A stretch of 64,000 nt of DNA from Diplonema japonicum (GCA_964019335.1 OZ025696.1:62001-126000); one strand, 5' to 3'; shown: positions 10,052 to 31,884, counted from the first letter of the stretch. A program made the numbers and translations. Notes: generated by a model from the sequence alone, not told the origin.

Positions 10052-10060
10052 TTAAAAAAG

Positions 10061-10106
10061 AACACATCTGATGTACTTCTTATATTTCCATGTTATCCCC
10101 ACCACC
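10061..10106 (-). repeat. 5' fragment (P1 strand + J1/2) of the ribozyme-headed SINE-like family
   Basis: GGTGGTGGGGATAACATGGAAATATAAGAAGTACATCAGATGTGTT, identical to the head of the copy ending at 14410. Confidence 0.8.
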
Positions 10107-12957: not shown

Positions 12958-13108
12958 ATATATATAAGCGTTAAAGTGCGCTCGTGCAGTTGCTGCCTGT
13001 TCGTCACCCTGAGCATCTGCAATACGTTCGGGCGCTACCGGTGATGACCGACGAGGAGGTCAACACCGAACAACACATCTGATGTACTTCTTATATTTCC
13101 ATGTTGTC
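12958..13108 (-). repeat. Internally deleted ribozyme-SINE copy (ribozyme core joined almost directly to the tail)
   Basis: Keeps ACCTCCTCGTCGGTCATCACCGG and GACGAACAGGCAGC. The 5' P1 strand is missing. Ends in a TTTAACGCTTATATATAT tail. Confidence 0.8.
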
Positions 13109-14139
13109 AAAAAAAAAAAAAAAAAAAAAAAGGCAATAGAAGGACGCTAAGGGGAAAAAAGGCAATAAAAGGACGCAAGGGAGCACTATAGAATAACTCT
13201 ATGAAGTCTCACACAATACCATAATACCACAAATAAAGATTAAGAATATGTTTCATTCATCTTTGGTATCAGGGGGGGGTAGGGGGGGAGTCAAAGGGGT
13301 TGAAATTTCCAAAATCAAATCTTGCACATATGTGACACAAAGGCGCAAAAAACCACCAATCCCAAAGATCGCCCAAAAACCCATTTCCCGGCCGAGTTTC
13401 AACGAACTATGCAAAGCGGGATACAAGCCGGGGCCGTTGGGTGCCAGAAGGGTCAGGCGGTCACGCCCCTTTGCCTGCAAACAAAAAAACCCCCGAATAG
13501 CGGCGGAAAGTAGTTTCTTTTTTGGTATGTGGGTAATCTTGTGGTACAATTTACCCAGAAGGTGCGTTTTCTGAAAAACACGAATTTCGAGATTTTTTAG
13601 GCACGGTGCCCCCCCTAGGGCTATGTTAGGGCAAGGAAAACGCGTTTCCAAGCTTTTTTTTTTTTTTTTTTGAAAATAAGGAAACGTTTTCTAATTCCTT
13701 TGGGGGGGGGAATTCTGCATATGTTCTAAAAGAAAGGGCAGAGCTTACCTTTTGATTACTGCAATGGTTTCGTGTTCATTATGGAAAAAAAAAAAAAAAA
13801 AAGAGCAACTATTTACTACCGACAAGTAATGACTTTACCTTTTTGCTCCGCTTAAGAGCTGCACAGGGAATAAGACCCCCCCAAAAAACAAAAGAGGTTG
13901 ATTGTTTGTGCAGCCGTGGTCACCTATTTTAGGATTAACGGACAAGGTGCCTCTACTTTTTTTTTGCAATGCCAGCAAAAAGAGTAATAAAAAAAAAAGA
14001 AGAAAAGGAAGCCACAAGCATTGTCTACTTGATTGCTGCAGCTTCTTCTGCATTCCATCTTCAAAAAAAAAAAAAAAAAAAAAATGGGGCTTTGATTGCA
14101 ACACTAGGTGGCGTTAAGCGTGCAATGAAGCACGAACTA

Positions 14140-14410
14140 CCTACTTGATTACAGGGGGCGCTCCTCGGCCGAGTTGTAGCTTCTTCTGCGTTCCGCGTCG
14201 TGTCCTTAATGCGTGCGGTGTGCTCAACCCTAGCCGGGGCGTCCCGGGTAACCAAGATTCTGCGTTCGTGCAGTTTGCTGCCTGTTCGTCACCCTGAGCA
14301 TCTGCGTTACGTTCTTCCACTCGGGCGCTACCGGTGATGACCGACGAGGAGGTCAACAGCGAACAACACATCTGATGTACTTCTTATATTTCCATGTTAT
14401 CCCCACCACC
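14140..14410 (-). mobile_element. SINE-like non-autonomous retroelement with 5' HDV-like ribozyme (best-preserved head)
   Basis: Homologous to 23734-24059 and 31616-31884. No credible ORF. Starts immediately after a sense-strand T-tract. Confidence 0.85.
14277..14410 (-). ncRNA. HDV-like (nested double-pseudoknot) self-cleaving ribozyme, predicted
   Basis: P1 GGUGGUG(14410-14404)/CAUCACC(14339-14333). P2 GCUGUUG(14360-14354)/CAG[G]CAGC(14284-14277). P3 ACC/GGU. L3 UCCUCGUC. P1.1 CC/GG(14332-14331). P4 CGCCCGAGU/GCUC[A]GGGUG. J4/2 CGAA with catalytic C at 14288. Confidence 0.85.
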
Positions 14411-14433
14411 CTTAAAAAAAAAAAACCGTAAAA

Positions 14434-14504
14434 AGAGATAAAGGAGGCCAGTGTTGAAGGGCATCCTGCACAAGCACTGTCAACTTGATGCAGGGGGGGC
14501 GCAC
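14434..14504 (-). repeat. Diverged 3' fragment of the SINE-like family
   Basis: aaggaggccagtgttg...cctgcacaag...acttgatgcaggggg..gcgcac aligns to 23741-23810. Confidence 0.65.
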
Positions 14505-14736
14505 TTCGAAAAAAGACAAATCAGAAAAAAAGAAAAAGAATTAAAAAAAAGAAAATGTAGAAAAATGTACAGTGTTGTCAAACACGCAACAAAGCGTGTG
14601 GGGGCTTGACACCCTCGCTAGTGCACTCTAAGAACCCGAAAACTGCTCTAATCAAATTCGAGTGCAGGGTGAGAAATAAATATTTGCCCTGTGCAGCTCT
14701 TTGAATAAAAAGAAATGACTTTTTGAAAATTACCTC

Positions 14737-14771
<35 letters not shown>

Positions 14772-15105
14772 AGCAAAATCAGACGTATCCCACTGTGAAT
14801 GGTGTTCTTTTCGTCATTTCTTTTTTTTGTTTCTTTACTTCTGGAAACCCCCCTTAAAAAAAAAAACTTACTTTACGTGGTTCCTTTATCAATTTGAAAT
14901 ATGTGCCCCCCCCCCATTTATTTTTTCGTTCTAGCATTGGGTCGCGGCTTTATGCTTCCCTACTGCTTCAATTTTCACATTTCTTTTTTTTTTTTGTGCT
15001 CATAAATAATTACACCAGAATTAAAAAAAGAAAAAAAAAAAAGAAAATCGATGCCAGAATAAACTCACTATTTCTTTTTTTTTTGTGTCACAAAAACTTA
15101 TACTA

Positions 15106-15198
15106 ATATATGAGTTAAAGGAAGTCTTTGTGAGACGCCCCCTTGTTCTCATCTTCTACCCTGCACCTATCCCCTTTCAGCAGCGGTTTCTCCTCCTA
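15106..15198 (-). mobile_element. Very short 3' fragment of LINE subfamily A
   Basis: Near-identical to 9707-9797. Confidence 0.85.
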
Positions 15199-16072
15199 CT
15201 AAAAAAATCAAGACCTTTGGCACCAATGGCGACCGCTTTGCTGCATTACATTTTTCGTCGAAAAAAAAAAAAAAAAAAAAGTTCTTGTGACAAAAGAATA
15301 GTAAGAGTAAATTGACCATAGGGGAGAGAAAAGAAAAGAAAAAAAAAAAAAAATAAGAAGACACAACCATTAATTATTTCTGCCCAGCACAAAGTGTGAC
15401 AAGTTTCTAGTTTATCATTTTTCTTCCCCCGCATAGCTGCAAGGAGGAACTGTCTGTGGAGTAGCTTATAAATTCTTATTTGCCAACTTTCCCCTTACAA
15501 GTCAAAAGCTTTGTTTGTTACTGTAAAAACGAAAAAAATCTGGAAGAGAAAAACTACCGGCATTCTTCCATGTGCATGGGTGCAAACAGATTGTTGTCAC
15601 TCCGGCATTTCTTTCTCTCCAGGACTTTTTTCGCTTTACAGTATTTATTATGTTATTATTAAATAATGGTTCAATTTTATTTCACTTTTTTCGTCATTTG
15701 AGTCACTCACTCTTCACGGCCGGAATGGCATCAGATGGCTAAAAATAGACAAAATACCCCCCCCCCCCACCCCAAAAGAAATTCAAGGGGGTTGTATTAT
15801 TCTTATGACTTATGTCTTGTTGTTCGCACGAGTAAAGGGAAAAAAAAAAAAAAAAGGAAAAAAAAAAAAAAGAAAAAAAAAAAAAAGCCGCATTAGCCTT
15901 TTTTTTTTCTTTTTTTTTTTTTTTTTCTCTTTTTTTTTTTTTTAGCTCGGCACAAGTTTGCATAAGGTAAATAAAAATTCGTTTGAAAAAAAAAAAAAAA
16001 AAAAAAAAAAAAAGCATAACCTAAATAATTCTGCCTTTTAGGGGGGGGGGGTATTATCGCACGAATGAAGAT

Positions 16073-23733: not shown

Positions 23734-24059
23734 ATATATAAGAGTTAAAGGAGGGCCGGTGTTGGCGGCGCCCTGCACAAGAACTGTCTACTTGATTACA
23801 GGGGGCGCACCGCGGCCGAGTTGTAGCTTCTTCTGCGTTCCGCGTCGTGTCCTTCATGCGTGCGGTGTACAGCTCAACCCCAGCCGGGGCGACCCGGGTA
23901 ACTAAGATTCGGCGCTTGTGCAGTTTGCTGCTTGTTCGTCACCCTGAGCATCTGCATTATGTTCTTCCACGCGGGCGCTACCGGTGATGACCGACGAGGA
24001 GGTCAACAGCGAACAACATCTGATGTTTTTTCTTATATTTTCATGTTATCCCCGCTACC
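23734..24059 (-). mobile_element. Full-length SINE-like element (~325 bp) with HDV-like ribozyme head (23927-24059) and LINE-type tail
   Basis: Core ACCTCCTCGTCGGTCATCACCGG, J4/2 CGAA and P2' CAAGCAGC are intact; P1 has two mismatches. 3' end CCTTTAACTCTTATATAT. Confidence 0.85.
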
Positions 24060-31615: not shown

Positions 31616-31884
31616 ATATATAAAGAGTTAAAGGAGGGCCGGTGTTGGCGGCGCCCTGCACAAGAACCGTCTGCTTGATTACAGGGGGTGCACCACTTAA
31701 TGCGTGCGGTGTACAGCTCAACCCCAGCCGGAACGACCCGGGTAACTAAGATTCTGCGCTTGTTAGTCACCCTGAGCATCTGCGTTATGATCTTCCACTC
31801 GGGCGCTACGGTTATGACCGACGAGGAGGTCAACAGCGAAACAACTCATCTGATGTACTTCTATTTCTTGTTATCCCCGCCACC
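31616..31884 (-). mobile_element. SINE-like element with degenerate HDV-like head
   Basis: Homologous to 23734-24059 with internal deletions. J4/2 reads CUAA (C at 31766). Confidence 0.85.

Follow-up and report, generated by a model that had tools for sequence, protein, structure and literature searches.

On the minus strand of a 64,000-nucleotide (nt) stretch of Diplonema japonicum DNA (GCA_964019335.1, OZ025696.1:62001-126000; the whole stretch is hereafter called the window), positions 14410 to 14277 form the head of a dispersed non-coding repeat, termed family A. A preliminary description made from the sequence had read this head as a self-cleaving ribozyme resembling that of hepatitis delta virus (HDV), placed exactly at the 5' end of the repeat. 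The analysis presented here supports that reading computationally, with cleavage as a prediction: 14410 to 14277 is probably the 5' head of a ~326-nt non-coding retroposon, encoding an HDV-like self-cleaving ribozyme that would act as proposed below. The support comes from the specificity of a structural descriptor, a 5' boundary common to all copies, an RNA strand set by copies that carry a spliced leader, and a related ribozyme (family B) at the head of a long interspersed nuclear element (LINE). It also comes from the detection of family A by a covariance model of family B, from pairs that changed in a compensatory way from one family to the other, and from common variants that spare the helices.

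The predicted ribozyme at 14410

The predicted fold consists of the following parts.

14277..14410, minus strand: predicted HDV-like ribozyme, 134 nt, with the predicted cleavage site 5' of G14410
14410-14404, minus strand: P1 5' strand GGUGGUG, pairing with CAUCACC (7 bp including one G-U)
14403-14361, minus strand: J1/2 insert, 43 nt, with its own 10-bp hairpin (14402-14393 / 14370-14361)
14360-14354, minus strand: P2 5' strand GCUGUUG, pairing with CAGGCAGC at 14284-14277
14353-14351 / 14342-14340, minus strand: P3, ACC/GGU, enclosing L3
14350-14343, minus strand: L3, UCCUCGUC, which contains the conserved U and G as well as the CC of P1.1
14339-14333, minus strand: P1 3' strand CAUCACC, partner of GGUGGUG
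14332-14331, minus strand: P1.1 GG, pairing with CC at 14349-14348
14327-14290, minus strand: P4 stem-loop, 38 nt, present in the minimum free energy (MFE) and centroid structures, with common variants in its loop
14288-14285, minus strand: J4/2, CGAA, with C14288 as candidate catalytic cytosine
14284-14277, minus strand: P2 3' strand CAGGCAGC, with one bulged base

Along the minus strand these parts run in the order P1, J1/2, P2, P3, L3, P3', P1', P1.1 GG, UAG, P4, A, J4/2 and P2'. This is the order of the HDV nested double pseudoknot, with P2 abutting P3 and P3' abutting P1', and the descriptor match at 14410..14277(-) conforms to it. The canonical order had been described earlier, and every coordinate given for it is correct when read on the minus strand. 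L3 (UCCUCGUC) and the following GG agree with the HDV model consensus UCCuCGcU and are invariant across family A, family B and B', a degenerate relative of B. The rule C-N-R-A for J4/2 is represented by CGAA in family A and by CUGA in the sister family, which speaks for presence only. P2 can be drawn in two registers, one with a bulged G and the other with two G-U pairs and a bulged A, the latter being the register of the sister family. Both the MFE and the centroid structures computed with ViennaRNA recover P4, most of P2 and the ~10-bp hairpin previously proposed for the J1/2 insert. The overall folding z-score was unremarkable, as expected for a pseudoknotted fold.

The descriptor used for searching asked for P1 and P2 of 7 bp each, with a single bulge allowed in P2, for 3 bp in P3, 2 bp in P1.1 and 5 bp or more in the P4 stem, and for a J1/2 no longer than 60 nt; L3 had to match U[CU]CNNGN(N) and J4/2 had to match CNRA. 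It was composed after the candidate was known and is therefore a calibrated plausibility check rather than a blind test. On both strands of the window the sole match was 14410..14277(-), and the strict descriptor had no match in 300 dinucleotide-preserving shuffles. Matches in the same number of shuffles rose to 9 when P4 was omitted and to 97 when P1 was allowed 6/7 pairs and P4 was omitted. Matches to published HDV descriptors are comparably rare, one example being 11 matches in 2.1 Gb of sea-urchin sequence (PMC4870747).

Copies of the repeat and a related ribozyme at a LINE head

Family A comprises 1,291 first-look candidates in the 62.5-Mb assembly, and both outer anchors are retained at the right spacing in at least 427 copies. 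Because the 141-nt head shows 99-100% identity in the 30 best copies, the window copy, whose first 141 nt are identical to the family consensus, can be taken to represent that consensus; many copies are 100% identical across the 141 nt, which indicates recent activity. The preliminary description had noted that homology between copies in the window ends at the predicted cleavage site (10106, 24059, 31884). The same holds genome-wide: in 30/30 genomic copies homology starts at G1 (GGTGGTG), with a T tract and then 0-3 variable bases ahead of it, and about 75 further copies start at the same G1. The young subfamily has A, AA, AAA or AAG as its extra 5' bases, and another subfamily has CA or CCA. 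At its other end the element closes with ...AATCAAAGCCCCA, followed by a T tract; other subfamilies have the first ~290 nt in common and differ in their 3' ends, each again followed by T(n). Several young copies lie directly behind the 3' end of another copy, and no consistent target-site duplications were readable in the low-complexity flanks of family A copies.

Five copies lie in the window, all on the minus strand (5' ends at 14410, 24059, 31884, 13108 and 10106), that at 13108 being absent from the preliminary description. The copies and their immediate surroundings are as follows.

14085..14410, minus strand: whole family A retroposon copy, 326 nt, from GGTGGTGGGG to AATCAAAGCCCCA
14411..14425, minus strand: 5' flank, T(12) then AAG, with variable junction bases outside the element; the T-run and AG make a trans-splice acceptor
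14063..14084, minus strand: T(22) tract directly abutting the element's 3' end; no poly(A)
14433..14504, minus strand: 3' part of a copy of another subfamily, head-to-tail and just upstream of the 14410 copy
23734..24059, minus strand: older copy of another subfamily, with two P1 mismatches and P2 G-U changed to A-U
31616..31884, minus strand: degraded copy with two P1 mismatches, one P1.1 G lost, J4/2 as CUAA and P2' deleted
12977..13108, minus strand: 5'-truncated copy without the first ~10 nt, preceded by a T tract
10058..10106, minus strand: fragment limited to the element's first ~49 nt, with a T tract before it

Two changes previously cited as compatible with the structure, G-U to A-U in the copy at 24059 and CGAA to CUAA in that at 31884, are indeed present, but both copies are also disrupted. 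The other window copies are defective and give no evidence of structure-preserving evolution. All long open reading frames (ORFs) around the 14410 element are on the minus strand, and the strand of the nearest long open frame is shared by 18 of 23 young copies and by all five window copies, which fits co-transcription with gene arrays.

A descriptor scan of loci around reverse transcriptase (RT) genes gave one sequence-distinct match, at L056:8302-8427 (contig 14:772301-772426), which defines family B. Its helices are P1 AGGGGUC/GGUCCCU, P2 GCUGCCC/GAGGCAGC, P3 ACC/GGU and P4 GCGCA/UGCGC, and its remaining parts are a J1/2 hairpin CACACA/UGUGUG, L3 UCCACGGU, GG, GCAAC and J4/2 CUGA. A search of the genome with L056:8200-8720 returned 13 copies at 98-100% identity, with alignments starting at query positions 99-104 where the predicted cleavage site is 103 (within 1-4 nt). 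Many family B copies lie 1.2-4.2 kb upstream of RT matches on the same strand. The 5' untranslated region, matching L056:8900-9622, can be followed in L053, a 5'-truncated copy, into an ORF that encodes a 2A-like ETNPGP and an apurinic/apyrimidinic endonuclease (APE); the full order 2A-APE-RT-RNase H was measured in the neighbouring LINE ORF2 (L056:3119-7327), and this order is the make-up of L1Tc/ingi elements. The genome holds hundreds of such L1Tc/ingi-like LINEs, which end in poly(A), and at least one of their families has the related ribozyme at its own 5' end. On contig 52 (152010-168027), RT matches of a LINE family encoding 1429 amino acids recur every ~7.65 kb on one strand, a spacing that suggests tandem LINE arrays.

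The degenerate tandem copy B' is 80% identical to B and lies 235 nt upstream of it. It belongs to a short element (L056:8067-8299) made of a degenerate HDV-like motif (L3 UCCCAGU, P1' one base shorter) and ~100 nt of further sequence, which recurs at no fewer than eight genomic places, at least, always as a pair of pieces. B' may be a second ribozyme-headed short element, this copy probably being inactive.

Among 4,227 Rfam families, the HDV models gave the best matches to B and B', the only parts of that stretch that these models match. With RF02682 the E values were 0.0077 for B (25.9 bits against a gathering score of 44) and 0.048 for B', and with RF00094 the E value was 1.4, all below the gathering score; the alignment covers P3, L3, GGGCAAC, P4 and GGCU.A. 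A covariance model was then built from B and B' only, with P1, the J1/2 hairpin, P3 and P4 as its structure, filters off and rough calibration. Its best match in the window was 14410-14269(-), full length and beginning at G14410 (E~1.2e-4), and its second was the copy at 24059 (E=0.03). Genome-wide, the ranking ran from copies of B and B' through four to five intermediates to family A variants. The intermediates, at 36-45 bits (contig 51:146178-146320(+), 42:279181-279331(-), 45:81856-81991(+) and 46:414238-414371(-)), may represent a third ribozyme family.

Families A and B share the core GCUG...ACCUCC.CG..GGU-P1'-GG ... AGGCAGC. The ribozyme of family A can therefore no longer be regarded as an isolated family, as it had first been read, since its core is common to the head of an L1Tc/ingi-like LINE. 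BLAST of the short element against 22 LINE loci gave no similarity, and by eye no family A head was found upstream of the RT matches listed. A metagenome scan with the shared core pattern returned 120 loci, none with the full HDV layout. These loci (L065-L184) are dominated by the motif GCTGCAGACCTCCTCGTAGGTNGGGTTGGG, many of them on soil and sediment contigs, and the motif evidently represents a bacterial coding sequence that is conserved and has no relation to the ribozyme.

When five sequences from A, B and B' are aligned, P1, P2, P3 and P1.1 contain standard pairs only, in 94 of 94 pair cells. Between A and B, four pairs change on both sides, three in P1 (G-C/A-U, U-A/G-C and G-C/C-G) and one in P2 (G-C/C-G), and slid controls of the A/B alignment gave zero such changes. 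Between B and B', P4 shows C-G replaced by U-A. For family A itself, Logan contigs of four public runs were aligned to 13000-16000 and revealed nine common variants in the ribozyme (element positions 19, 31, 32, 99, 101, 104, 105, 50 and 64). Seven fall in J1/2 or P4 loops, one turns a G-C of the J1/2 hairpin into G-U, and one changes L3 base 4 from U to A, giving UCCACGUC, a form also found in family B. None of the nine disrupts P1, P2, P3, P1.1 or J4/2. Relative to the window copy, the dominant form in run X2 carries changes at five positions of the ribozyme, each of them in a loop. Runs X1 and X2, labelled as other organisms, contain the repeat at high depth and almost none of its unique flanks; related species may share the element, or the two runs may be RNA data sets. 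Subfamily proportions also differ between runs (14312 T>A, 74% in X2 and <1% in X3). A second, unrelated high-copy repeat occupies 15020-15221 of the window, with contig depth in the four runs of the same order as that of family A.

These data bear on the idea of a chance resemblance, in which an ordinary repeat would happen to contain complementary heptamers and an HDV-like loop. The post hoc origin of the descriptor and the matches of its loosened forms to shuffled sequence lend it something. Against it stand the silence of the strict descriptor on all shuffles, the coincidence of predicted cleavage site and repeat boundary in two independent families, the Rfam HDV matches of the sister family and the detection of the 14410 site by the sister-family model, and we find this explanation scarcely credible.

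RNA strand, predicted cleavage and the proposed route of mobility

Nine genomic copies of family A carry a spliced leader joined as ...TATTG|GTGGTGGGG (junction ...CUUUAUUG|GUGGUGGGG) and end at the usual 3' boundary; they represent several subfamilies and have different flanks. A spliced leader can stand only at the 5' end of an RNA, and the ribozyme strand is therefore the strand that was reverse-transcribed. In these copies the T-run and AG upstream of the element worked as the acceptor for trans-splicing, at a distance of 1 nt from where cleavage is predicted. Most leader-headed copies themselves follow T-rich tracts, and the T tract on the 5' side therefore belongs to the target DNA and not to the RNA. 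The notion that leader-headed copies persist only with a broken ribozyme was discarded: three of the nine are broken (L034, L039 and L041) and at least four look intact. In L034:1513-1630 (contig 1), a 23-nt deletion removes L3, P3', P1' and P1.1; a second copy 600 nt downstream in L034 is 5'-truncated by ~30 nt, has a different P4 and shows no recognisable P2'.

The leader recovered from the retrocopies, (A)ACCAACGATTCTAAAGCTACAGTTTCTGTACTTTATTG, differs at two positions from that listed for Diplonema sp. (PMC3795323 supplement), and kinetoplastid leaders are clearly different. The host's leader is thus Diplonema-like, and by its leader the host is probably a diplonemid or near relation, not a trypanosomatid. 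The 3' half of the leader followed by GGT occurs 218 times in the genome, at dispersed sites that are often close to the end of a contig. Unrelated sequences are joined to the full leader in L032 (contig 2:150577) and L033 (contig 2:1000466), and the leader of L032/L059 is found ~3.8 kb upstream of an RT gene. In this genome, retrocopies of trans-spliced RNAs seem common, with leader-headed LINEs possibly among them.

The leader-headed copies also bear on strand assignment. If the retroposon were read on the plus strand, it would end in ...CCCCACCACC and poly(A), and the HDV-like fold would be incidental. Such an element would explain why A runs trail the copies on the plus strand and why nothing but that end remains in the 10106 fragment, the pattern of a plus-strand copy truncated at its 5' end, and the LINEs of this genome do use poly(A). 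The nine leaders, however, sit on the ribozyme strand in copies with the same 3' boundary as ordinary copies. Moreover, 1-3 variable bases separate the A run from the element and the same homopolymer flanks the other end, a T tract again stands before those copies that lack part of the ribozyme end, subfamilies are alike at the ribozyme end and unlike at the other, and the LINE-derived model aligns full length on the minus strand. A plus-strand origin is therefore very unlikely.

Several observations weigh against the self-cleaving ribozyme as the source of the 5' end. An A stands at -1 in about 70% of the roughly 75 additional copies, so that a T-run plus AG acceptor, demonstrably used, lies 1 nt away; the extra bases are partly linked to subfamily (CA), which is unexpected if all RNAs start at G1; and because several leader-headed copies keep an apparently intact ribozyme, cleavage would not be complete. 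The T tract in place of poly(A) at the 3' end also sits uneasily with the proposed mobilisation. On the structural side, the first P1 pair of family A is G-C and not the G-U wobble of HDV, and a shared P1 variant (U6-to-C, GGUGGCG) is uncompensated. Rfam gave no HDV match for family A, either on the whole window at the gathering score or on 501-nt and 99-nt sub-stretches at E<=10; a weak MIR5298 match (E=0.028, 27.6 bits against a gathering score of 70), which spans the T tract, was dismissed. Family A is too uniform for covariation, with almost no informative variation within it. The covariation that exists is essentially one comparison of A with B, and B was found with a descriptor that demands pairing, so that independent support for B comes from its boundary and its Rfam matches. 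Finally, the Logan contigs resolve the presence of the repeat and not RNA ends, strand or leader junctions, and cleavage is predicted only.

Some of these points would suit a relic, that is, a family A derived from a LINE-head HDV-like ancestor and no longer cleaving efficiently. Its 5' end would then be set by trans-splicing at the T-run and AG with later loss of the leader, or by another nuclease, and its fold would be kept by youth. The leader-headed copies, some with intact cores, do attest a used acceptor and incomplete cleavage; conservation proves little in a family that is 99-100% identical; P1 opens with G-C while P2 has a bulge and two G-U pairs; and there is the lack of an Rfam match. 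On the other hand, a trans-spliced RNA would retain its leader, as in the nine copies, and only these nine were found against several hundred to over a thousand copies starting at G1. The boundary is at G1 whereas the splice junction is at G2, and subfamilies with several substitutions and a J1/2 insertion retain every helix. A relic ribozyme seems to us rather improbable.

For an active HDV-like ribozyme at the head of family A, the following route may be proposed. Family A has no evident promoter of its own and sits in T-rich intergenic tracts, mostly oriented as the neighbouring genes, which together suggest read-through transcription: a sense-oriented copy would be transcribed inside a long transcript, a step for which orientation is the support. 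The RNA is predicted to fold into the nested double pseudoknot and to cut just 5' of G14410, with C14288 as general acid, giving an RNA that begins with the element's own first base. To judge from the structure of the copies, this RNA would be reverse-transcribed by an RT supplied in trans and integrated into T tracts. Because a related version heads an RT element in the same genome, the arrangement looks like the known device for self-excision from a longer transcript. The T flanks, the lack of poly(A), the partly subfamily-linked extra 5' bases and the placing of young copies behind others could reflect priming by A runs on a U-rich 3' end, or unit-length or circular RNA released from head-to-tail copies.

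The second of these options leads to a more far-reaching proposal, which we think unlikely: that family A is, in a diplonemid-like protist, a new kind of ribozyme-dependent retroposon, with a 3' U-tract, T-tract integration in sense orientation, and unit-length or circular RNA in a retrozyme-like cycle driven by an HDV-type ribozyme. The ribozymes of two head-to-tail copies would both cut and release the unit-length or circular RNA, and sense-orientation integration into T tracts of polycistronic units would guarantee read-through. Both the T tracts on either side and the partly inherited 1-3 junction bases would be explained by such a cycle.

If the family A RNA cleaves, ribozyme-headed retroelements reach beyond trypanosomatids to a Diplonema-like lineage, and the combination of HDV-like 5' processing with an L1Tc/ingi-type LINE would predate kinetoplastids or have been acquired repeatedly. 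Hundreds to over a thousand self-cleaving sites would then lie within polycistronic transcripts, where they could shape mRNA 3' ends, the choice of trans-splicing sites and transcript stability, as SIDER elements do in Leishmania. The association with T tracts, together with the missing poly(A), suggests that integration proceeds by a mechanism not yet described. With a consensus-identical copy at hand and clear mutants available (C14288U, P1 swap), the predicted cleavage is simple to test at the bench.

Relation to known ribozyme-headed elements

HDV-like ribozymes that head retrotransposons at their 5' ends are established in R2 and in the L1Tc/ingi clade of trypanosomatids (PMC3185411, PMC4035085, PMC3774820). 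The literature consulted gave no report linking such ribozymes to Bodo, Trypanoplasma or bodonids, and the word ribozyme is absent from the first diplonemid genome paper (D. papillatum).

The closest parallel is L1TcRz/Pr77 of the clade of L1Tc, NARTc, ingi, RIME and SIDER, in which the ribozyme forms the first bases of a LINE and of short non-autonomous elements and cuts just upstream of itself (PMC3185411, PMC4035085). The host is likewise a euglenozoan with polycistronic transcription, and the LINE described here has the same make-up, with a 2A-like peptide, APE, RT and RNase H. The preliminary description saw no similarity to the 77-nt trypanosomatid hallmark, a statement that is not established: pieces of L1Tc rebuilt from published primers (+1 CCCTGGCTCAGCCGG; +27 TGGTGCCAGGGTCTAG...CTAAGCGCCTGCTG) resemble family A in the layout GGU-P1'-NN-UAG ... 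CUAA. This comparison, made by eye on the primer-derived pieces +1-15 and +27-77 only, shows a similar layout and largely different sequence. Family A differs from L1TcRz in its length (134 nt against 77 nt), its structured 43-nt J1/2, its long P4, its P1 sequence and its P1.1 of two pairs where L1TcRz has a single pair. It differs from the L1Tc clade in that it shares only the ribozyme core with the LINE, has a 3' T tract instead of poly(A), and resides in a host with a Diplonema-like spliced leader. Judged by its lack of similarity to the 22 LINE loci, it is not a deletion derivative of a LINE, and it has neither poly(A) nor consistent duplications.

In R2, J1/2 and P4 also vary in length, the active-site sequence is near that of HDV, and 5' junctions vary when the ribozyme cuts at the element end (PMC3774820), as the junction bases of family A do. 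R2 is autonomous and site-specific in 28S rDNA, whereas family A is dispersed, non-coding and associated with T tracts. Next to the HDV consensus core gCC-UCCuCGcU-GGc-P1'-GG-GCAAC...GGCuAA, family A reads ACC-UCCUCGUC-GGU-P1'-GG-UAG...GACGAA and family B ACC-UCCACGGU-GGU-P1'-GG-GCAAC...GGCUGA. Both families differ from the Rfam HDV models (RF00094, RF02682) in their long J1/2 inserts. In large HDV-like ribozymes, a J1/2 helical domain joins the far ends of P1 and P2 and is reported to speed cleavage by pinching the helices (Webb et al. 2016; PMC4908430). Families A and B each have a J1/2 hairpin, unrelated in sequence to one another.

Retrozymes are short, non-coding, non-autonomous retroelements, often arranged head-to-tail, with hammerhead ribozymes and circular RNAs. 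Family A resembles them as a short non-coding element, often head-to-tail, whose ribozymes could release unit-length RNA; it differs in ribozyme class, and no repeats like long terminal repeats were seen in it. Among these systems, family A is of a known type, the ribozyme-headed retroelement, with an unusual short element attached.

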